Shown in pieces: positions 17,690 to 48,245 of a stretch of 64,000 nucleotides of DNA. Source of the stretch: Paramoeba atlantica (taxonomy: Eukaryota > Protista > Discosea). The stretch spans positions 372,001-436,000 of the forward strand of contig CDRNVI010000149.1 in the NCBI GenBank assembly GCA_977017575.1, written 5' to 3'. A model generated the notes under the pieces. The model made no database searches and had not been told where the DNA came from. It saw only the letters and a list, made by a program, of their open reading frames with translations. Position 1 is the first letter of the stretch; each line of letters starts with the position of its first letter. The position numbers and the translations under genes were made by a program.

Positions 17690-18584
17690 AATATTTGGCA
17701 AATATAATATCATTTAGGTAGCCCTTGGTTGTAAAAAAAAAATTCGGGGTAAAATTGCCGCTCGAGTTCATCAGGCCACTTTTGGGAGTGTCAACTTTGC
17801 TGTCCCAGGTGTCCTCCTCATCGAATTTCGTGGCAATGATAAAATAGAGTGCCAGGATTGTCCCATCCGCAGTGACAAAAGGTAGGAATGTCCCACAGTG
17901 TGTCCCTTGCACCTTTGATCGATTTTGGAGCTTTGATTGGTCCTTTCAAGCCAGTCGCTTGATTTGTAATTTACCCTCAAGAGCGTTGAAGTCTTGAATG
18001 TTCCACAGAATATTCCCATGACAAACAATGAATCCGGAAATCACTTTTCTGGATCGCCGAACAACTTTCTGAGAAAATTTCCTTTTGCCGAAAACCCGAT
18101 CAAAACCAAATAATAAATCATTCTCATTTTTCCCATTTCAATTGGTCTCGAGGAATTAACGAAGAGTGAGGAAAACACAACACTCTTGTCATAGTTCACA
18201 AACATTTTGGGAAGGACTATTTTCGACTCCAAAAAGTTGCCTATTTTCTCAATAAATTCCATGACTTCCTCGTAGATGTTCAGGTTGGCTCAGTCATTTC
18301 GAAAGAGAGACAGATGCCCGAGACTCAAGTGCTCCTTGTGTTTCATAAAGAACCCTCTGAATTGTGCTTTTTGAGATTGACTTTCTGAACATCAATTCAG
18401 CAGCACTTTTGGTCTCCATAATCGACCATGGCTTTTGTACATTCGCCATCACAAGAATAATGTCCAGAAGTGCTTTGTCTTCATCCTCAGATAAGAGGGA
18501 ATTCCCATGGACTGTAGACTTTGGCTTCTTTCGATAGTAAGCCATGGTGATGGCTGTTGGCTTAGCTTTGTACACTTTTGACAA
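17690..18584 (-). pseudogene. pogo/Fot1-like (CENP-B HTH + DDE_1) transposase remnant
   Basis: LLSEDEDKALLDII helix-turn-helix region, FVNYDKS, TFLPFVTADGTILALYFII and TTKGYLND, spread over several frames. Confidence 0.6.
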
Positions 18585-20004
18585 TTTTGAAAAGGCCTCT
18601 TCATTTGTTAAACCTCACTTCACAAAGTTTGTTCCACCTCCTCCACCAGGTTCTGGTATTTCATCACCACAATAAAATAAAACAAACGGTTAGATGCAAT
18701 AATTTGAATTTTTTCAAACAAAGGAGTTTTTTTTTGACAAAGACACCACCTGTTCGAAACCAACTTCATCATCCACATCCTTGGTTGCTGAACAGAGTTA
18801 TTGCACCAAATGCTATCTTGACAAGTATTTGGTGATGATCAAGGATGAGAGTGATGCTGATGTATTTGCTTCAATTTCATTTGAAACAAAAGAATGATGT
18901 AGTGATGAGGGGAGCTCTGATGAGGGCTCTGAGGAAGAAATTTCTCAAAGGTGGCAGCAGGCAAAGAAACAAAAAGTTTGGATTTTTTTTGATTTTTTTT
19001 GTCTCTCTTTCTTATTCTTTCTCCCAGCAGCAACAGAGGAGGAAGCCACAAACAACCCCATCACTACCATCACCTTCTTCCCACACACGCACAGAAATGT
19101 CGGAGCGGACAAAAAAGTGATCACCCAATCCCAGTTCAATGCAAACATTGGAGTGAAAGGCTCTGTGAGAGGGCAGATCCTCAAATCTCTTTCTGGAGTA
19201 TGATCCAAAGAATCTTGTGAGAAAAGGAGGAGAAGCAACTTGAAATCCTTGCCTTTGTTTATAGGATAAACAGTTTTGGCCAATCCTTTTCTTTTGAAGG
19301 GTATTTGATTGTGCTGGGTGTTGGTCTTGATGATTGTTGTGTGAGAGGAGGCAAAATCAAAAAACTAAAACTCATACAGAGAGGGGAAAATGGATTGCAA
19401 AGCATGAGAGGGGAACTGGTGGGGGATCTGGGTTCAGTACCTCCTGGAGAACCAAAGCAAGATTCAATTTGACAGAACTTGATTTGTGGAGAGTGCCCCA
19501 AAGGGAGCTGATCAATCTCTTTGAGAGACCCCAGATTTGTCACCAACAAAATGGAAAGAGCAGTGGAGGAATTTATGTCTTTTCTTGAAAGGCAACAAGT
19601 GTTGATCAAATGAGGCATGGTCTTCCTTCAGAGTCCCTCTTTTCCTTTTCTTTGTTTTTCACTTGTTTTTTTCTGTTTCTCCTGACTGGAAAGCCAAAAA
19701 ATTGGTTCCTTTTGGCCGCTTTCCAATTAGGAAAGCGGGGTAACCTGTAGAGGGTGACTTTTCCCTCACCCGGGGTCTCCTTTTTTCTGGTAAGGTGGCT
19801 GACATCAGACCCTGTTGGTCTCTGAGATTGGAATCTCGACCAGTGTCACTGCTCTCGCTTCTTTCTTCTTTCTTTTTCACTTTTCTTTTTGTTCCTTCGT
19901 TCTCGTGAACGTTGTTTTCTTGTGTTCCGTTCGTGAGCCTGACACTATTGGTTTTTTGTGTTCTGTTTATTGGGTTTTTTGTTGCCTAGTGCCTTTTTTA
20001 CCCT

Positions 20005-21066
20005 TTGTTTTTCTGTTTGGCCGTATTGTGTACTACAATGTCAGACACTCACAATTCTGATACTGAATACAAGGTCGTGATGGGCGATGCCACACGACCC
20101 GCTGATCGTCTTGCTTCCTTGGAAAAGCGGTTTGATGCTCTCACTAGTTTGCTCCAAACTGTTGTGGACAGGGATCCAAGCGGTCTCAACTTGTCTTTGT
20201 TGTCAACCCCACCCTCAAGCAACCTGTCTCCAGGTTCTGGTATCTCCTCCTCCTCGTCTTCTACATGCTTGACATGGTCTCCTCTGGATCCTCCCTCGTC
20301 TTCTCCCAGCTTTGGTCAGAATACATTGAGTGCTCCCGCTCCTTCCCCCTCCCCTTTGCCACAGTCATGTACGCCAGCTGGGTCGAACGAAATTCCTGGC
20401 TTGTCCTTGCAAATTCCTCCTCCTGGTTTCATCAAACCGACTTGTGGTCATTCTACACTTAAACATGACCCCGCGCGGTTGTATATTTTGGACAACCCTT
20501 TCACCTGGCCTCAGTTTGAGCCTCTCAATCGTTGGGAGACGTGGGCCACATCGAAGAAGGCGGCAAGAAATGTCAATGAATTGTCTGTCCTCTGTACTTG
20601 TGATGCTCTCGTGGAGAAGGTCCTCGAGGAAGCCGCGTCGGGTGGAAATCCTGGTCACTATGCTAAGTTCCTGAGCCAGTTTATTCAGGTTCGTGCGGAC
20701 TTACTTCACGACGCTGATTTGAGAGGGTGGGACCTTGCCCTTCCTGCGCGCAGTATTGCTACCGCCAGACCAAACAAAAAAGGTTGTTTCTCCTGCGGTG
20801 AAAGTGGTCACTCATCTAGAAGTTGCCCTAATAAGGCCAAGGCTGCGGCGGCGCCTGCTCCGGTTGTCCCAAAGTCAGCTGAGCAAGCTTTGAACCAGAT
20901 CAATGGTTCTTTGAACCAAGTTCCTGGTCCAGCAGTTCCTTCTTTCCCCATGGGTTTCTGGCCACCTTTCCCCCCTCAGTTCCCTGGTCCGTATCAAATG
21001 CCTCCAGTCGCGGTGTTGCCTGTGCCGACTCCCCCCCTGTGCAGTCATCCGATACAACTGTGGTGA
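20005..21066 (+). CDS. gag: Gag-like ORF1 with CCHC zinc knuckle
   Basis: CFSCGESGHSSRSC motif, first ORF of the element. Confidence 0.8.
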   Translation: MFFCLAVLCTTMSDTHNSDTEYKVVMGDATRPADRLASLEKRFDALTSLLQTVVDRDPSGLNLSLLSTPPSSNLSPGSGISSSSSSTCLTWSPLDPPSSSPSFGQNTLSAPAPSPSPLPQSCTPAGSNEIPGLSLQIPPPGFIKPTCGHSTLKHDPARLYILDNPFTWPQFEPLNRWETWATSKKAARNVNELSVLCTCDALVEKVLEEAASGGNPGHYAKFLSQFIQVRADLLHDADLRGWDLALPARSIATARPNKKGCFSCGESGHSSRSCPNKAKAAAAPAPVVPKSAEQALNQINGSLNQVPGPAVPSFPMGFWPPFPPQFPGPYQMPPVAVLPVPTPPLCSHPIQLW

Positions 21067-21369
21067 AAAAGAAGAGTCGTAGGAAGCGCAGGAAGTCACG
21101 CAACAGGGCTTCCTCCTCTAGTTCTTCCTCTTCTGAGGATCATTCCTGACCCTTTGGCCCGGTTGAGGGTTATGACGCTGCCAAGAGCCCCCTTTTGCTC
21201 GCTTCATCCCCTCCCAAGCCGAACCAACCTTCCAGCACGATTGCACAGTCGTTGAAGTGTTTGGAACACGTTACCTCTACCTTCAGATGTCCTGGAGTGG
21301 GTCAACACAGGGGTACGCATCCCGATAAATGCCAGTGCTCAGCCTTTTCATGCTCAGAACAAGTTTCCG

Positions 21370-22866
21370 GTGGAACACACTGCGTTTGTCACAAACGAAA
21401 TTCAGAGACTTTGTTGTCTTTCTGTGGTGAAGGAGGTCAGCTCTCCCCCCTTTGCTGTAAATGCTCTCAAGACTGCACCCAAGAGTGGTTTGTGCCTGTG
21501 CAAGACTCTGAGACTGGTTGTTGTGGGTACACGAGTGGACAAACTTTATTCTCTGTATCAGAAGTTGAGGCTCAAAGTGATCCCATTCTTCTCCATGGTG
21601 ATAACAGAAGCAAGAAAGGCAAAGGCACTCACAGTCATCAAAAACACAATCGCTCTCTTGCTCTTAGGGAATGTCACAGCCCGGCAACTTGCCAAAGTGA
21701 TGGGGACGCTAACTTCTCTGGCACCAGCGTTGGACATTGTCAAGATTGCCAGCCCAGCACGAAAACCCTTGAGGATTCTGAGACCTACATGGATGTGGGA
21801 TTCTTACGTGGTGGTTCCACCAATGACAATCGCAATCCTGACCTTTCTCTGGACTCAGATTTACGAGAACAATGGGAGGCCATTCTCCCGCCCTCTACAA
21901 ACCAAGATTGTTGTCTCAGATGCTTCCAAGTCAGAACGTTGGACGGGATGGGGATTTGTGATAGATGCAGAGGAAGGTACAATCTCAGTGGCAAGCCGGT
22001 TCAGCGACGAGACAGCAATGTTCTCCATTGCAGCACTGGAACTCTTGGCTTTCATGGAGGCAATACAGACTTCCCTCAACCTGAAGGTGATTCGGAGGGG
22101 CGACGCAATCCAACCTCTCATAGACAATGTGGTGGCTCTTTATGCTCTAAAGAAGGGGGGAAGCAGGAACGATTTTCTGGACTCAATAGCAAGAAAGGCC
22201 GTTCTTCTTCTCCTACGGAACGATCTGCATTTGTGGAATCCTCGTTACATCCTGTCAGCAATAAATCCAGCTGACGCTCCTTCTTGTCTCAATGATCGGG
22301 GATCTTGGATGACATTACCTTGGGTTCAGTCACTTCTGCTGAGCATTGTTCCCCCCCTAGACATGGATCTGTTCGCCTGCAATCTGTCAGCGGTTGTTCC
22401 TTGCTTCTTCTCAATGACCCTTTGTCCAAACAGTGCAGGTGTCAATGCATTTGCAAAAACTTGGCCACAGAAAGTGTGGATGTGTCCCCCTCTGAGTATA
22501 ATCGCACCAGCATTAGCAACTCTGTTCAAATCTCAAACACATGCCCTGGTCGTTGCGCCATCTTGGAAATGTCCGTGGTTACAACCCCTGTTACGTGGAA
22601 GTGCTTGTTGGCTGCTCACTTTGGATTGGACATCAGGAACAATGCATCAACCAGTCAGTTGTTCAACAGAACTGTCACAGATTTCATTGACAAAATGGAT
22701 AGCAGTTTGGTTTTGCCCAAACCTCTTTGTGACCCGCTCGAGCCCTCCACCAGAGCCAGCTACCTCACGATATGTGCGGCCTTCGACTCCTGGGCGTGTG
22801 AAAGAGACTATTGCGCTTTCCCTGCGACAAATGCAGTGTTGTCAGAATATGTTCGGTCCAAACTAG
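21370..22866 (+). pseudogene. DIRS pol remnant: RT thumb, RNase H and Dam-methylase-like domain; RT palm missing
   Basis: SDAS..WG, ELLA, IDN, NPADAPS (RNase H); DLFAC...NAFAKTW..VWMCPP (methylase-like, NPP replaced by CPP). No YxDD. The upstream VLEWVNTGY segment is broken by a stop and a frameshift. Confidence 0.8.
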
Positions 22867-23615
22867 CTCATGGTCTGGGGGCAGCGGCTCTCAGCGTCAT
22901 TTCTGCGGTAAGAAGAATTCACAAAGATCTCGGCCTTACCCCACCAGTTGTGGATCAGTCAGTCGTCACTGCAGCCAGGAAGGTGCCAAGAAAACTCCCT
23001 GATGTTCAGCCATTTCCCATGTCTCTGGCAATCCATGCATGGGAAACCGGTTCCTCTTCAACCAAGTTCTATGCGGTCATTGCTGCATTGGCTTGTCATC
23101 TAATGTTACGCCCTGGTGAAATTGGTAAGATCCTCCTCTCGGACGTTCACCTCGCTCAGAATGGTGTTTGGGTATGTCTCAGAGCAAGGAAGTCTGATAA
23201 GATCTTAAAGCGGAATCCATGGCATCTTTTGTCTTGCTCTTCGGATTCCATTAGAACCTTTTGCCTTCCATGCGCTGTTTACTTACTGTGTATTGCTCGA
23301 TACGAAAATGGTACGGACGCAAGCCCACTGTTTGCAGATGCGAAAGAGTTTCCTCTTCCCCCTGGCATAATGGGCACCATTTTCAACTTCATTGCAGCAG
23401 TGGTGGATCCTTCCATGGGCTCCAGATTCACGGGAAAAAGTGGAAGGGTTGGCGGTGCAATCAGTGCAGCTCTGGGCGGAGCCCCTGAATTGGTCATCTG
23501 TACGTGTGGAGATTGGCGCTTGGACGCTATCAGGAGATACATTGCTGGCATTATGGCGTTGAAAACAGAACTTTTCTCCTTGATGGTCTTGCCAGGGACC
23601 ATGACCCAACCATAA
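22305..23615 (+). CDS. Tyrosine recombinase overlapping pol; the true start is probably internal
   Basis: LRPGE (Arg), RARKSD (Lys), GKSGRVG (His replaced by Lys in HxxR), GDW, RRY (Tyr). Confidence 0.88.
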   Translation: MDDITLGSVTSAEHCSPPRHGSVRLQSVSGCSLLLLNDPLSKQCRCQCICKNLATESVDVSPSEYNRTSISNSVQISNTCPGRCAILEMSVVTTPVTWKCLLAAHFGLDIRNNASTSQLFNRTVTDFIDKMDSSLVLPKPLCDPLEPSTRASYLTICAAFDSWACERDYCAFPATNAVLSEYVRSKLAHGLGAAALSVISAVRRIHKDLGLTPPVVDQSVVTAARKVPRKLPDVQPFPMSLAIHAWETGSSSTKFYAVIAALACHLMLRPGEIGKILLSDVHLAQNGVWVCLRARKSDKILKRNPWHLLSCSSDSIRTFCLPCAVYLLCIARYENGTDASPLFADAKEFPLPPGIMGTIFNFIAAVVDPSMGSRFTGKSGRVGGAISAALGGAPELVICTCGDWRLDAIRRYIAGIMALKTELFSLMVLPGTMTQP

Positions 23616-23743
23616 CTATTTGTGCAGTCCTCTTTGGATTTTTCCTTCTGTCTTTCTCTCCTTTTTCTTGTTTCTGTCTCCTTTTGTCTTCTCCATGAGT
23701 CTTGTTCCTTTAGAAAGGAACTCTCGGAGGGTTATCCGGAAAT

Positions 23744-23816
23744 GCTCGTTTAGCTTAGTTGGTAGAGCGCTGTGCTAATAATGCGGAGGTCACAGGTTTG
23801 ATCCCTGTAATGAGCA
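23744..23816 (+). tRNA. tRNA-Ile(AAU), degenerate copy
   Basis: Differs from the 39268 copy by four CG-to-TG changes, including T-loop TTTGA. Confidence 0.8.
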
Positions 23817-24062
23817 ATTTTTTTTTTTGAAAAAAAAATTGAAAAAAAAATCAATCTCATCTCATTGACTTCCTCCTTTTCCCTTGTTGTGGTTGGTTGG
23901 GAATTTGAATGGGGTTTTCTTTTGTCTTTGTTGGTCTTGAGATTCTGTGAGTGCTCAAGAAGGAATTAAAACCTTTTTTTTCTCTCTCTGAGTGTCCTTT
24001 TCTTCTTTTTCCTTCTTCCATCAAAATCACACTAAAATTTGATATCTTTTCAATATACATTC

Positions 24063-24136
24063 TCCTCCTTAGCTCAGTTGGCAGAGCGTGTGGCTGTTAA
24101 CCCACAAGGTCGGAGGTTTGAACGCTCCAGGTGGAG
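24063..24136 (+). pseudogene. tRNA-Asn(GUU) pseudogene
   Basis: Relative to 42315: extra C in the anticodon stem, TTTGA T-loop, T-stem mismatch. Confidence 0.8.
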
Positions 24137-24968
24137 TTTTTTTTTTTTTACCCAACCCCCTCACTCCACAACTTTTTGCAGCTCCATTTTTCAATAAGAT
24201 TGTGGATGCTTTTCAACATTCAGCTATTTTCCAGCTCAGAATGGTGCAGTCAAAAGATATGTTCAAGAAGCTAAAAGGTCTTTACTCTGTTAAATTGTTG
24301 GAGGGTGAAACAAAACAAGTTGGGTGAAATTTTTGCCAGTTGTTCAAAAAAATGTCTTTTAGTGCCAGAAACATAAGTCAACACCACCTCATTTGCTTGG
24401 ATGTCTGGAAGAGAGAGAGAGAGAGAAACCAGGCAGCAAATTATGAAGGGTTGAAGTTGGAAATTGCCCCACACTCCTGAACAACTGTTGGAAAGGAATC
24501 GAAAGATGGTTTTTGAAGTTTATCCAACCCTTGTGAAAATTGTCCAAAGAAATGAGTAAAAAAAGGCTGTGATTAATGTGAATGAAAGAAACCAAAAGCA
24601 ACAAAATCTTTGAATGCCAAAATTCTTTCGAATGGTCTGTTGGTGATGAAACTGAAGACCACCCTCACTCTCAACCTCCTTACCTTTACAAACACCAGTG
24701 GCTTGAACATTCAACTATTGCACCTTCAGTATTGGAGAATAATCCCCAAAAAGAGAAAAAAAAAATGACAGTATGACTTACTTTCAAAATTGTTTTTGAA
24801 AAGTTTCGAATTTTTCTTGGAAAAGGAAGTTTCTGAAGAGTTTGGTGATCCCACACAAAACAGATACACCATTTTGATAGAGAAAAACAAAAGAACAAAC
24901 AATGACTTCAAAAAAATAAGACCAATTCTGCCCCACCCCCTGCTGCATGGATTTGAAGAAAAAAAAAG

Positions 24969-25040
24969 CTCCCTTGCCGGGAATCGAACCCGGGGTGGCC
25001 GGGTGAAAGCCGACCGTGTTACCGACTACACCACAAGGGA
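24969..25040 (-). tRNA. tRNA-Glu(UUC)
   Basis: Reverse complement TCCCTTG...GTCGG-CTTTCAC-CCGGC...CAAGGGAG. Confidence 0.95.
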
Positions 25041-27799
25041 ATTTGTGAAAAAAAGACAAAAAAAAGCTGTTGTATTTTGTTGGGGAGAGGGGCAGGGGCG
25101 GGGGAGGAACAATTTCAACCAGAATGGGAGCAAATTCTGGCAGAGTGCGCTTTCTTTGTCCAAAAGACCATCAACTTGATGACTCTTTTCACAACTCCTT
25201 CCATTAAACGAAGAACCTCAGTAAAATGGAGATAAATCAGAATATTGTTGTGATTGGCATGTGTGTTCAAACACCCTCCCCCCTCCCCCCAAGAAGCGCT
25301 TCTCAGTTCTTTTGCCCTTTTGAACCTGAATGGACAAGAACTTTTGAAGCAAGGACACAGCAGAAGGAAGTTGTACATGTGAGGATTTGTCAGAATTCAA
25401 GGTTCCCCAATTGGCTCAGAACTCTAAAAACTGGAAAAATCAAGAAAACTGTTTTGTGGGGGTGTGTTTGATGATCTCCTCCAAAATAAAACTGGTTGTT
25501 GAAAAAAAGTAGGATGTGAAAAGAGGCAAATAACAGGAAAAAAAATATTTTATTTCTTCTGACCAATTCGAAAAAAAAAATATGCTTTTATTAAACTCAA
25601 CATCATCTTGCCTTTAATGAATCTTCCCCCTCTCCTCTCCTCAACTCAAGTCAAATACAATGTTCCCTGCCTGCCAACTGCTGGTAAATCTCTGATGAGA
25701 AAAAGGATAAAAATAAACCCTTTTTTGTCTGTTTTATTTTTTGGACTGAAACTAAAATACCCTCTTGATTTGAGAGGATTTCATCTTGAATATATATATA
25801 TATATATAAAATGGTAAAAATCCACAAGAAAAGAAAAGAAAAGAAAAGAAAAAACAAGAAAAAAAGGAACAGAAAAGAACAGAAAAAGGAAAAAAAACCA
25901 AAGGAAAAGACCCTTCTTAATTTCAACAACAACCAAAAAAAAACACAAAGTGGTTCCACAAAGTCTCTTTCTCTTCACTCTTTCTCCTCTTTCCCTTTCC
26001 CTCTTTCTTTCTCTTTCTCTCTTTCTCTCTCTTCTCTCTTTCTCTCTCTTCTCTCTTTTCCTTTCTCTTTCTCTTTCTTTCCTCTTTCCCTCTTTCCCTT
26101 TCTCTATTTCTCTCCTCTTTCTCTCTTTCTCTCTTCTCTCTTTCTTCCCTCTCTTTCTCTTCTTCTCTTGCCCCAAAACGAAAACCGAAAACAAAAAAAA
26201 GCGATTTTTGAGGTTTGTGATTTAGAACCTTAATTTTTCGGGGTGTGGAAAAGTGGAAAAGCTCCTCTTTTCGTCTTTTTCTGTCTCGTTTTTTTTTTGT
26301 TTTCCTCTCTCTCCTCTCTCTGCGCTTTTTTGTTGTTCTCTTTCTTTTTTTTTTGTGTTCGACAAAACTTGACATCATTTTTCTCATGTCTCCTTTCTCT
26401 TCTTTTCTTGACCCCCCACCCCCTTCTTATTCTCTCTTTTCTGACCCGGCATTTTGTCCGACCCCTGAGTGAACAAAACAAGAGAGAGAGAGGTCTTCTT
26501 CCTTCTTTTCTTTCTTTTTTCTCTTCTTTTTTCTCCTTTTTTTTCCTTCTTCTTCCTTTTCCTTTTTTCCCTCTTTTTTGGTCCTTTCTCTTTTTTCCCT
26601 TTTTTCTTTCTTTATCCGTGTTTTGATGCTGTCAAGGTTAATCCATTAGCCTGGTTTGGAATCTTTTGGTGTTTTGTTACCTTGAGATAAAAAAAATAAT
26701 CTGATTTTTGAAGATTATCAGGAATTTATTGCCTTTGCTGGGTGATTAAAATTTAATCCACCTGCAATTTAATCTCTTCTCCCGGGGAACTCCTTGGGGA
26801 ACTCCTTGGGGAACTCCTTGCGTTGAAATCTGCTGACCGATTTCTTATTCCTGAATTGATCGCGACAAAATGATTGGTTCAGCGAAAACAATTTATTTTC
26901 CAGAGAATGGAAATTTCATTTTCCAAGAATTACAAAACACTTTTCATTTTGATTTCATTCATTAAAACATTTTCCAAATCCAATTTGATTTGTTCTTTAT
27001 TCTCTTACCTTTGGCTACACGAGACTTTAACGTCTTGGGGAAATGGGGGCAATGTTAATTGTGACATTGATACCCACTTGAAAGATGTGAGGAACTTGAA
27101 GATGAGGAACTTGAGCTTCCAGCAATCAGGTTGTGCTGCCCGGCTGGAGTCTTGGATATAGCCCTGTGCAACATGATGGCTACTCCACGCACCTGACACC
27201 ATCAACTGGTCAGTTGTCCCCCCATTCTCAACAATGGCTGTGGCAGCAGCTCTCCTTCAAAAGGAGTGTGAGGCATAGTCGGATGGATCGCAATCAAGAA
27301 ACACAGCAATTTTTTTGGCAATTGTACTGATTTGGTTCTTTCCAAGGTGCTGGGCCACAAAACAACCATTCTGCAAAGTCTACACCAGAGGCGAGGTTGA
27401 TTCAGCACCAGGGTCAAGTGCTTCTCAAGTTGGACTGCTGTGTTAAAGAGACCGACTGCAGGGACAACAACTCAGGTTGTTCTCAAATTTCTTGATTTCG
27501 CACACATCTTTGAATGACCACCTCCACTGAACCCTCTTTTTTGTGGAAAATCACATTCTCACGTGTCAAAGTTGCGACCTCAGCCAAGAACTGTTGCACA
27601 GCCTTTCAAGTTTCATCAAGGTTTGGTTGCTTCCGCTAACAAGATTGGTTTGGCAACATCAGGGATCCCATTTTCGACATGACAACGCTCTCCCAGACAC
27701 AGTTTGAGCCATTTTCCAAACAAAAAGAGAAATGAAAAAATGAAAAACGTGAATCCAAATTTTTTAATCTCATATTTTAATCTATGCAGAATTTTCAGG

Positions 27800-28180: not shown

Positions 28181-28234
28181 AGGGGATCTGAAAATGAAAA
28201 GACATTCAATCTTTGCTTCAACTTTTCAAGAAAA

Positions 28235-38873: not shown

Positions 38874-39267
38874 AATTTTTTTTTCTTTGTTTTGTTTTTG
38901 AATTTTTTCCTCTTTTTTTTGACTGAAAACATTTTTTTTTCTTTTACTTTTTTTTTTTGAATGAAAAATAATCTTTCAATTTTGATTTTGAAAAGGTTTT
39001 CCCTTCCCTTTGAAAAAGAAAAAAAAAAGAATCTTTGGGAAATCCTGAAAAATAATATTATTTGGGGAAATCAGACTATGTTTTTTCCTCCATTTTTTGT
39101 GAATTAACAATAAAAATTGATTTTCACCTTCATTTTCTCCAATCACTTTTTTCATTTGTATATTTTTCCTTTTTCTGCTCTTTTTCTTTGTTTTTCACTT
39201 TGTTTTTCTGTTTCTCCAGAAATTTTTCCCACTGGAAAGCCAAAAAATTGGTTCATTTTTCAGAAAT

Positions 39268-40930: not shown

Positions 40931-41599
40931 TTTGTTGAAAGAGTGAAAAAAAGTAAGAAGGATTACCAAAAAAATCAATCAAAAAAAATCAAAAAAACAA
41001 AAACCCTCTTGAAGAAGAGAAAATAAAAAGGGAGAAAATGAAAAAGAATAATAAAAAATCCCTTCCTCTCTTCCAAATTAGTTCCAAATGAGGTTCACTC
41101 ATGTGAAAATCACCAAATAAAAAAAGAAATGTTCCTTCCTTTCTAAAAACACCCTCATTCTCCCATTTTCTGAATCACAAACAACAATTCTACCTTCCCC
41201 ATCCACATCAACACCTCCCTCTTGGACCATGGAATATTGAGAATCACACCTGAACCTTCTGTTCCAAAACATCAAATAAAATTCCCTTCATATTCCATCA
41301 CTTGAATTTGATGATTCTCAAAATCAGAAACAAACAACAATATTCCCATCCCCCTCCTATCAATGCCAACATTGTAAAGATTGTTAAACTGACCCCTTCA
41401 GAAGAATCTTCCGACCAATCATTATCAATAATAATTAAACACTTGAATTCAATGATTGGAAATATCAGCAACAATAATTCGACCTTCTTCATCCACATCC
41501 ACACCCACACTGGTTCATCATCAACCTGACCATCTTCAGAACCTTTTGATCCAAAAGATTTGATCAATTCTCCTTCTCTTTGTTTAAGATTACAACCTT

Positions 41600-42417: not shown

Positions 42418-42798
42418 GCCGCTGCAAAGGTTTTGGCCAAAGAAAGTGTGGATGTGTCCTCATGGCTTGGGCGTGGCTGCTCTGAGTGCCATTGCTGCAA
42501 TTAGAAATGAAATCCATGTTATGCATCACTCAATATGGAAATGGCTCTGCTTCAAGTGATGAGAAGGAACTGGAAGGGTTGGTGGTGCGATCAGTGCGGC
42601 TCTGGGTCTGCAACAAGACCATTGAGGGAGAAAAGATGTGTTTTCAATGACATAATGCCTGCAATGGATCTTCTGATGGTGTCTTATGGTGCCGCCATAA
42701 CTATTATTTTGTGGCATTCCCTTTGGACTTCTCCTGTCTTTTATTGTCTTCTCTCTGTGTGTGTGTGGTCTCTTTAGAAAGGTGCTCTTGAAGGGTAA
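42418..42798 (+). mobile_element. Deleted, diverged copy of the DIRS-like element (methylase and YR pieces plus right end)
   Basis: Matches 22450-22490, 22875-22920 and 23440-23475; ends CTTTAGAAAGG...GAAGGGTAA. Confidence 0.75.
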
Positions 42799-42811
42799 TT
42801 GTCATATATCT

Positions 42812-42928
42812 GGTTGGGTAGCGAAGCGGTCAAACGCGCCAGACTCAAGAGTTAAATCTTGGCTGTAAAAATACAGTGTTTAGTCTTCTGGTCCTTCGGG
42901 TTCGTGGGTTCGAATCCCACCTCAACCA
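42812..42928 (+). tRNA. tRNA-Leu(CAA) with 36-nt intron (42850-42885)
   Basis: CCAGA-CTCAAG[intron]T-TCTGG; long variable arm. Confidence 0.93.
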
Positions 42929-46972: not shown

Positions 46973-47548
46973 TGGGTGCAGTCGAAAGATCTGTTCGAGA
47001 AGTTAAAGGTCTTACTCTATTAAATTGTTGGAAGGTGTGATTGTCCAGAAACATAAGTCAACACTACCATTTGCTTGGGTGTCTGGAAGAGAGAAAGAAA
47101 CCAGGCACCAAATTATGAGGGGGGGGGGGGTTGAAGTTGGAAATTGCGACAATCGAAAAATGCTTTTTGTAGTTTAGCTCTTGCAAAATTGTCCAAAGAA
47201 ACAGGTAAAAAAGGCTGTGATGATGTGAATGAAAGAAACTGAAAGAATAAATCTTTGAGAACCATACCATTCTTTCTAAAATGGTGGTACATTGGTGATG
47301 AAAGAGGACCACCCTCACCATCAACCTTCAAAAAAAGATGATAGTGTGACTTACACTTTCAAAATTGTTTTTGAAAAAAGTTTCAAATTTTTCTTGGTTT
47401 TCTGGACCCACAAACAGATACACCATTTTTGATGGAGAAAACAAAAGAACAAACAATGACCTCAAAAAATAAGACCAATTTCTGCCCCACCACCTCCACA
47501 CACATGGTGTGGTGTGGTGGTTCCACAAAATTGAAGGTAAAAAAAAAG

Positions 47549-47620
47549 CTCCCTTGCCGGGAATCGAACCCGGGGTGGCCGGGTGAAAGCCGACCGTGTT
47601 ACCGACTACACCACAAGGGA
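47549..47620 (-). tRNA. tRNA-Glu(UUC), second copy
   Basis: Identical to 24969-25040. Confidence 0.95.
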
Positions 47621-47629
47621 ATTTGTGAA

Positions 47630-48245
47630 TAACCCTCCGAGAGTTCCTTTCTAAAGGAACAAGACTCATGGAGAAGACAAAAGGAGACAGAAACAAGAAA
47701 AAGGAGAGAAAGACAGAAGGAAAAATCCAAAGAGGACTGCACATTTATTCCATCCCGACCCACCCTACATGAGCCAAGTGCATTGACATAACAGACAAGC
47801 CAAAAGGGCTTGGAAGTGAAATGATCACCAGATCCAAGAAGAATCTGGAAACCGAAAGGTTGAATGGTTCTACCCGAGACATGTATCCACACATCTGATG
47901 CTCATCGACGAATCCGTACTCCAAAGTGGAGAGTCCAAACGCATAGTCCAATGCCAAAGTCCAAGGTGCAAGACCAAGGAGCAAAAGGAAAGAACAAAGG
48001 AGAGCAAGCAGCAAGGGTGGGGTGGACGGGATGAACACAAGAAAACAACGTTCACGAGAACGAAGGAACAAAAAGAAAAGTGAAAAAGAAAGAAGAAAGA
48101 AGCGAGAGCGGTGACACTGGTCGAGATTCCAATCTCAGAGACCAACAGGGTCTGACGTCAGCCACCTTACCAGAAAAAGGAGACCCCGGGTGAGGGAAAA
48201 GTCACCCTCTACAGGTTACCCCGCTTTCCTAATTGGAAAGCGGCC
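47630..48245 (-). mobile_element. Non-autonomous 616 bp derivative of the DIRS-like element
   Basis: Retains ~210 bp of the left end (19714-19925) and ~115 bp of the right end (23620-23734); absent from the paralogous site at 25049. Confidence 0.92.

Follow-up and report, generated by a model that had tools for sequence, protein, structure and literature searches.

Copies of a retrotransposon that encodes a tyrosine recombinase (YR) lie immediately in front of tRNA genes in the genome of Paramoeba atlantica (G000). We found one copy in a 64,000-nt stretch of contig CDRNVI010000149.1 (C149; this whole stretch is called the window, and positions without a contig label refer to it), where it ends 9 nt before a tRNA-Ile gene. 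Across the genome, every insertion with a readable 3′ flank adjoins the 5′ end of a different tRNA gene (eight out of eight events). This is a real, well-delimited family of tRNA-gene-targeting YR retrotransposons. Taken together, the sequences make it likely that the family is a low-copy, recently active one of the DIRS order, PAT-like and with split repeats, whose insertion at tRNA genes is guided by the RNA polymerase III (Pol III) complex.

The window copy lies between two repeats, A and B, and has the following parts, given here with its target:

19714–23734, + strand: element copy of 4021 nt, A-gag-pol-YR-B, with the reverse transcriptase (RT) core deleted from pol and without the A2-x-B2 module described below
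19714–19927, + strand: repeat A, 214 nt, common to the window copy and the 616-bp module
20038–21066, + strand: gag-like open reading frame containing a zinc knuckle of the CCHC type (in the copy of contig C170, PF00098 at E = 2.2e-5; 94% identity)
21256–22863, + strand: pol remnant, with the N-terminal part of the RT and its thumb, RNase H, and an MT-like domain
22296–23615, + strand: YR reading frame, open, ∼439 amino acids, overlapping the end of pol in another frame
23621–23734, + strand: repeat B, 114 nt, with an 8-bp palindrome (23704–23721) 13 nt from its end
23735–23743, + strand: junction T and 8-nt leader, TCCGGAAAT, between element and tRNA-Ile
23744–23817, + strand: target tRNA-Ile(AAT), first base G23744, with four CpG>TpG changes relative to the empty copy

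The element begins GGCCGC, with a perfect 9-bp hairpin at its nt 3–25 (19716–19738; DNA fold z = −3.6), and its right end reads ...GGAGGGTTA, the last base being 23734. The copy is defective: It has no x module, and a deletion at ∼21590–21602 has taken out ∼400 bp of the RT core, the xVDD motif among them. At other places in the genome, full copies measure 4429–4432 nt and have both the xVDD and DAS motifs. None of the three frames is interrupted in the C170 and C144 copies, and the copies at tRNA-Asn carry frame breaks. Repeat B is 99%–100% identical in eight of the nine full-length right ends and 96% identical in the ninth (C170:57447). Within the window copy taken by itself, a search for inverted or direct repeats at the termini yielded none, only short chance pairs. 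The repeats become visible only when the A2-x-B2 module is included.

By searching the genome with both termini and with the YR, we placed all right and left ends and read their junctions. There are 11 right ends, 13 left ends, and six YR-bearing copies, amounting to ∼13 copies from at least eight independent insertions, and all of these lie on the tRNA-rich contigs C143, C144, C149, C170, and C177 (C164, also named below, carries a different element). Their orientation is single: All copies are co-oriented with the tRNA, with B toward its 5′ end. The distances from the end of the element to the eight targets are:

Ile: 9 nt, or 8 nt counted from behind the junction T, in the window copy
Glu: 9 nt, solo module in the window
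Ala: 9 nt, in C170, where a module follows the full copy
Leu(CAA): 13 nt counted from GGGTAA and 9 nt from the end proper to the subfamily, an old remnant in the window
Asn: ∼10 nt, one old insertion that is now present as four copies, duplicated and rearranged
Asp: 7 nt, a module standing alone
His: between −1 and +1, likewise a lone module
Thr: between +2 and +3, inside the gene, full copy plus module, C144

The distances thus range from +2/+3 to ∼−10, with a mode of 8–9 nt. At the tRNA density of the window, the chance of a single random insertion falling in a 16-nt oriented interval of this kind is ∼2e-3, and for eight events it is ∼4e-22. An earlier note on this DNA, made from the window sequence alone, had claimed that the right end is followed by 9 nt and then by tRNA-Ile at 23744, which is exactly what we read, and had proposed a genome search with both termini as a check, which now places eight out of eight events at ∼−10 to +3. 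Its picture of a fixed distance from different tRNAs is borne out for the different tRNAs and flanks, but the distance is a mode rather than a constant, Asp lying at 7 nt, His at −1/+1, and Thr at +2/+3. The note had also held it unlikely that the adjacency derives from duplication of one ancestral insertion; with eight tRNA species, each having its own empty paralogs, this is upheld, the Asn copies alone being duplicates.

Further loci of the family inside the window, with their targets and two empty sites, are:

47630–48245, − strand: solo A-x-B module (B 47630–47743; x 47744–48032, ending AATAAA; A 48033–48245)
47548–47620, − strand: target tRNA-Glu(TTC), with the spacer TTCACAAAT at 47621–47629
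42420–42802, + strand: degenerate remnant of an older subfamily, with C-terminal pieces of the YR and the B end GAAGGGTAATTGT
42812–42928, + strand: target tRNA-Leu(CAA), intron-bearing, with its spacer at 42803–42811; read directly, with no ARAGORN call
39240–39267, + strand: paralogous empty Ile site, a T-run then CAGAAAT, also seen as a joint 19713>23739
25041–25060, − strand: paralogous empty Glu site, a T-run then CACAAAT

The unit at 47630–48245 does end like the window copy, 9 nt from tRNA-Glu and in the same orientation, as had been noted. It had been called a derivative, however, and it is not a simple deletion derivative: It is the A2-x-B2 module, or its solo remnant, of a split-direct-repeat element that is found complete in C170, in C144, and in three further lineages. 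The 616-bp module consists of A (214 nt), x (288 nt of unique sequence, with a G-rich block and AATAAA at its end), and B (114 nt). Four other modules match the solo module at 98%–99.5% identity, and two of the four stand behind full copies as A2-x-B2. The Leu remnant ends GAAGGGTAA(TTGT) before the tRNA-Leu(CAA) that starts at 42812. The 13 nt given for it in the earlier note are correct if counted from GGGTAA, but the distance becomes 9 nt if the end is set by the subfamily's own B-A junction, GGGTAATTGT followed by GGCCGC (C143:287817).

Comparison of filled and empty sites defines the inserted unit. The segment C143 ∼208.2–211.5 kb (L078) is a copy of window positions 17716–25210 without the element, its empty site lying at ∼209.7 kb between flanks that are 99.2% and 97.6% identical to those of the window over 1.5 kb each; the segment represents a haplotig or else a segmental duplication of recent date. 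The empty site reads ...GGTTCCTTTT directly followed by CCGGAAAT and tRNA-Ile, and the filled site reads TTTT, the element, T, and CCGGAAAT. The insert at the Ile site is therefore 4021 nt and one T; apart from this ambiguous T, nothing of the target is duplicated, as the earlier note had proposed for insertion in a T-run. The empty Ile (39268) and Glu (25049) sites on which the note had relied both exist but are paralogous, and the exact empty site in C143 is the better one. At the Ala gene the empty site reads ...CTTTT followed by CAAGAAAA and a G, the filled site being one T longer, and the Asp gene is alike. At Ile, Ala, and Asp alike, therefore, insertion adds the element and a single T and duplicates nothing. 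A contig of run X3 joins 19712 to 23735, as an empty allele would, but it is no evidence of polymorphism, as the 99% identical empty copy in C143 can explain it.

For Ile, Glu, Ala, Asp, Asn, His, and Thr, there are empty paralogs that match the flanks on both sides. At His and Thr, both flanks exactly match many empty paralogs, so these are true insertions and not deletions. A T precedes every left end, and the internal junction in tandem copies is B-T-A. No attP/attB-like core common to this junction and the targets was found beyond 1–2 T. The junctions fit recombination between a joined-end (B-T-A) intermediate and the target, with the crossover at or next to a T.

The four differences between the window tRNA-Ile and its empty C143 copy (23760, 23771, 23782, and 23799) are all CpG>TpG, one of them in the B box, and the next 1.4 kb past the gene holds only two substitutions. 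Among the element copies, 94% of substitutions are transitions, 55%–80% of these at CpG. This pattern points to cytosine methylation of the elements that spreads into the adjoining tRNA gene.

The complete copies in C170 and C144 have the order A1-ORFs-B1-T-A2-x-B2-tRNA (ORFs, open reading frames), with B1 and B2 identical at 114 out of 114 positions; in both tandems B1 and B2 share a private extra T that is not seen in the solo modules. The order B1-A2-x-B2 recurs with unrelated sequences in three other lineages (L032, L075, and L084; these and L076, L086, L087, and L088 are loci with relatives in other assemblies or samples). The pol of L032 is 44% identical to that of the P. atlantica family, and its own repeats are 96% (A, 208 nt) and 97% (B, 148 nt) identical; the YR is 51% identical in L075 and 36% in L084. 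Two of these, L075 and L084, are not located at a tRNA, so the layout cannot have come from several hits on a single target. In all four lineages a G-rich block (GGGTGGGT-like) with AATAAA stands just before B2, their other noncoding sequence being unrelated:

Window: 47744–47775, − strand
L032: 9630–9657
L075: 9160–9191
L084: 4530–4559

This block could be a poly(A) signal or another cis element. A hairpin of 7–9 bp is likewise present at the first bases of A in L032, L075, and L084, unrelated in sequence to that of the window copy.

Relatives that stand at tRNAs in other assemblies have YR identities of 49%–57%. In L032 the element ends ...CTCTCA(T), followed by CACCACAA and tRNA-Lys, and in L076, from the same assembly, it ends ...CATCTCA(T), followed by CGCAATAA and tRNA-His; in both cases the end lies 8–9 nt before the gene. 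In L086, from another sample (YR, 52% identical), a tRNA-Val starts 167 nt past the YR stop codon. Nine nucleotides past B2 of L075, the segment L075:9335–9400 holds A-box-like (TGGCTAAGCGG) and B-box-like (GGTTCAATTCT) words and may be a decayed Pol III gene, although neither ARAGORN nor Rfam (E up to 10) calls a tRNA there.

The encoded proteins place the element in the DIRS order. The pol gives a weak RVT_1 match (28.8 bits, just under the cut-off of 29.6) and aligns to P0003, the PF00078 (RVT_1)-bearing pol of a gag/pol/YR DIRS-like element in another assembly, over 601 columns (E = 3e-42, 26% identity). The alignment spans RNase H and a C-terminal block, DLFA...N...NAF...W...PP...P.W, in the place of the DIRS/PAT MT domain. 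The ESM Atlas feature neighbors of pol include a cluster partly annotated as Dam (PF05869). The YR protein alone has no Pfam match even at E = 10, so its identity was taken from its relatives and from a profile search against PDB. An exhaustive HMMER search with the YR gave 245 relatives, and PF00589 is carried by 26 of the 40 that were aligned; the family profile matches Cre at E = 8.5e-42 and XerD at 2e-18. The conserved catalytic set is R177, K204, K286, R289, W312, and Y320, where the position of K286 is H in most relatives and K in 14 out of 40. Pfam scans of the element proteins gave no match to rve (DDE integrase). Word-indexed homolog searches returned six matches for pol and two for the YR, and a scan of JGI metagenomes with the close-clade alignment returned none.

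With an RT/RNase H pol and a tyrosine recombinase instead of a DDE integrase, the element is on sequence grounds a YR retrotransposon of the DIRS order, as the earlier note had assigned it; gag, pol, the YR catalytic set, and the profile matches all agree. The presence of gag and RT/RNase H sets it apart from Crypton, in which the YR is the sole enzyme, and the MT-like domain that is apparently present sets it apart from Ngaro, which has split direct repeats and no MT domain. Dirs1-like elements possess inverted terminal repeats as well as an internal complementary region; the element has no inverted terminal repeats and is therefore not Dirs1-like. Split direct repeats of the PAT-like type, A1-B1-A2-B2, are present in C170 and C144, the window copy having only A...B. 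By its structure (an apparent MT-like domain and split direct repeats, in the scheme of PMC4157794) we class the family as PAT-like.

In this genome, positions −12 to −1 of the tRNA genes hold a conserved TTTTCAAnAAA(T) (for example, at 28223–28234, 39255–39266, and 40931–40942), which is probably the Pol III start-site region in this host, and most insertions lie exactly at T-run^CA (the caret marks the insertion point). This boundary, 7–9 nt before the mature tRNA, is probably 1–2 nt from the Pol III start site. Of the 213 occurrences of TTTTCA in the 64-kb window, only those linked to tRNA genes are used, and we infer from this that tethering to the Pol III machinery is the best and most economical reading. 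The His and Thr targets lack the motif at −9, and there the element stands at the 5′ end of the gene instead. Because TTTTCA is far too common and these two genes are used without it, the choice of site depends primarily, as far as the sequences indicate, on the tRNA gene or whatever occupies it, and the motif serves only to refine the position. A purely DNA-directed choice, in which the YR would read the T-run, the CAA initiator, and the first tRNA bases like an attB site without contact to any Pol III factor, seems unlikely to us in the face of these unused motifs and motif-free targets. The eight tRNAs moreover share no sequence beyond general tRNA features, the B-T-A junction resembles the targets only in 1–2 T, and relatives elsewhere take the same 8–9-nt position with different end sequences. 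What speaks for such a choice is that most events fall within the conserved TTTTCAAnAAA, that the T is common to every left junction and to the internal B-T-A junction, and that bacterial YR integrases commonly use tRNA genes as attB. A third account would have insertion be random or regionally biased, with survival at safe tRNA sites, or would have one insertion spread by segmental duplication. The tRNA-rich contigs C143, C144, C149, C170, and C177 are indeed full of large duplications and share many tRNA-cluster blocks, and the four Asn copies, with their identical left flank, are duplicates of one insertion. Even so, we regard this account as highly improbable: The targets are eight tRNA species whose flanks differ, and for each there is an empty paralog that it matches; the positions are precise to the nucleotide and the orientation is single; the same position is used in other assemblies; and selection could not produce an interval of 1–2 nt. 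Guidance of a Cre-like YR by the Pol III initiation complex to the tRNA start site, conserved across lineages and giving scar-free, oriented insertions, is in our estimate somewhat more probable than its opposite.

The anatomy of the complete unit can also be read in another way, in which the 616-bp A-x-B would be an independent nonautonomous element mobilized in trans and the tandems would be two successive insertions at one tRNA. Three modules do stand alone (at Glu, Asp, and His). We hold this to be possible but doubtful: The order ORFs-B1-A2-x-B2 recurs in L032, L075, and L084, two of which are not at a tRNA; the only AATAAA is located in x; both tandems share their private B variant between B1 and B2; and the module is on the tRNA side in all cases. 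Several points nonetheless weigh against the split-repeat, Pol III-guided reading that we prefer. Three of these are on the side of a module mobilized in trans: A1 and A2 within a copy are not identical but differ by 1.4%–2.3%; a double insertion at one tRNA, with a second hit at the regenerated T^CA, would yield exactly the B-T-A junction that is observed; the window copy, which lacks x and the RT core, occupies a recently filled site that is empty in the near-identical C143 segment, so that A-ORFs-B units may also insert as such. As regards guidance by Pol III, a DNA recognition site could include the conserved upstream motif, and L075, L087, L088, and the more distant L084 have no recognizable tRNA downstream. 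The sample is small, with ∼8 events in the genome, and the only possible RNA run gave three weak partial contigs, which allow no conclusion on expression.

On the split-repeat reading, the complete unit would be A1-gag-pol(RT/RNase H/MT-like)-YR-B1-T-A2-x-B2, of ∼5.05 kb. If the AATAAA in x serves as a polyadenylation signal, transcripts would pass B1 and end in B2. By the accepted DIRS/PAT model, replication would proceed through an RNA from A1 to B2, and the B1-T-A2 junction would be the template, or the equivalent, of the joined ends of a replication intermediate (compare the DIRS-1 cDNA; PMC7192593), and the YR would recombine the B-T-A junction with the chromosome at the T. The Pol III initiation complex (TFIIIB, TFIIIC, or Pol III itself) may recruit the YR or another element protein to tRNA genes; the local choice would then prefer T^C and, where the motif is lacking, fall right at the gene's 5′ end. 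Recombination between A1 and A2 or between B1 and B2 could leave solo A-x-B modules and A-ORFs-B copies like the one in the window, in the manner of solo long terminal repeats (LTRs).

Ty3, a Ty3/gypsy LTR retrotransposon of Saccharomyces cerevisiae, inserts within a span of a few nucleotides where Pol III starts, ∼10 bp upstream of mature tRNAs (PMC5911963, PMC8632968). Like the element described here, it uses many tRNA genes and leaves the gene body intact. Ty3 has a DDE integrase tethered to TFIIIB, a 5-bp duplication, LTRs, and a tRNA primer site and inserts in either orientation, whereas the present element has a Cre-like YR, no duplication (one ambiguous T), one orientation, and split direct repeats. 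By this comparison the outcome is Ty3-like and the enzyme different. In dictyostelids, DGLT-A (∼15 bp upstream), NLTR-A (2–6 bp upstream), TRE5, and TRE3 target tRNA genes, and such targeting has evolved repeatedly as a safe-site strategy (PMC5006619, PMC5911963). These are LTR or non-LTR elements, in contrast to the YR element here. The YR element of the dictyostelid survey, DIRS-1, was found only in centromeric DIRS clusters and not at tRNA genes (PMC5006619). DIRS-1 of Dictyostelium discoideum shares with our element gag, RT/RNase H and apparently MT, a YR, frames that overlap, and a copy of the joined ends in its interior; it differs in having inverted terminal repeats as well as an internal complementary region, and in inserting into other DIRS-1 copies.

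The layout A1...B1-A2-B2, with internal repeats downstream from the YR, is that of PAT, Toc, kangaroo, and Ngaro (PMC4157794), and PAT also shares gag, RT/RNase H, the YR, and apparently an MT-like domain, the placement with PAT being made here by structure. Peculiar to the P. atlantica element are the unique 288-nt x between A2 and B2, with its G-rich block and AATAAA, and the hairpin at the start of A; no tRNA targeting has been described for those four elements. Tyrosine integrases of phages and integrative and conjugative elements also combine a YR, a circular or junction-bearing substrate, a tRNA landing site, and absence of duplication. They use one specific tRNA sequence, usually its 3′ end, with a core shared with attP, whereas the present element uses many tRNAs at their 5′ flank, with only 1–2 T in common.

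Nonrandom insertion within a short distance of many kinds of tRNA gene, seen here in eight out of eight events and in relatives at Lys, His, and Val, is what distinguishes the elements that target Pol III genes. Among Pol III-directed retrotransposons, a 2018 review names LTR and non-LTR elements only (PMC5911963); tRNA targets go unmentioned in overviews of DIRS1-like elements and of YR elements in nematodes (PMC3266345, PMC4157794); and the published Paramoeba genome paper does not treat the transposons of the host (PMC5601477). We found no report of a tRNA-targeting YR retrotransposon in the full-text literature, subscription journals and Repbase not being covered. The combination of a YR retroelement with homing to Pol III genes appears to be new, each of the two being known separately. 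Homing to tRNA genes is a textbook example of safe-site choice, so far known for DDE integrases (Ty1, Ty3, and DGLT-A) and for endonucleases of long interspersed nuclear elements (TRE and NLTR); if our reading is true, a third, enzymatically unrelated integration chemistry reaches this niche with Ty3-like precision. How a site-specific recombinase is positioned with almost no core homology (one T) would also become testable, and scar-free insertion in fixed orientation beside a multicopy, harmless locus has the properties that are sought in targeted-integration tools. With few young copies, exact empty sites, and solo modules, the family also provides a natural system for the poorly understood replication of YR elements with split direct repeats.

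The Asn-group copies show a range of rearranged ends. In two of them (C149:536391 and C177:203995), the element is cut 30 nt before its end and fused to the D-loop of tRNA-Asn; the third (C170:57447) retains the whole end of the element and a spacer of 10 nt, and of tRNA-Asn no more than the first 14 nt. These three look like products of one rearrangement. The remaining copy (C144 ∼52.47 kb, L030) is truncated at element position 494 and is followed by two telomere-like TTTAGGG units.

A second, distant YR retroelement lies at C164 ∼158.4–162.4 kb (L047:4412–8391), with a YR that is 28% identical and an ORF of 991 amino acids. No tRNA occurs within 1.6 kb downstream from it, which indicates that the targeting is family specific. 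A first look at the genome as a whole with RF00005 gave ∼3400 tRNA candidates, the scored ones being concentrated on few contigs (C137–C185), and suggests a very large, clustered complement of tRNA genes.

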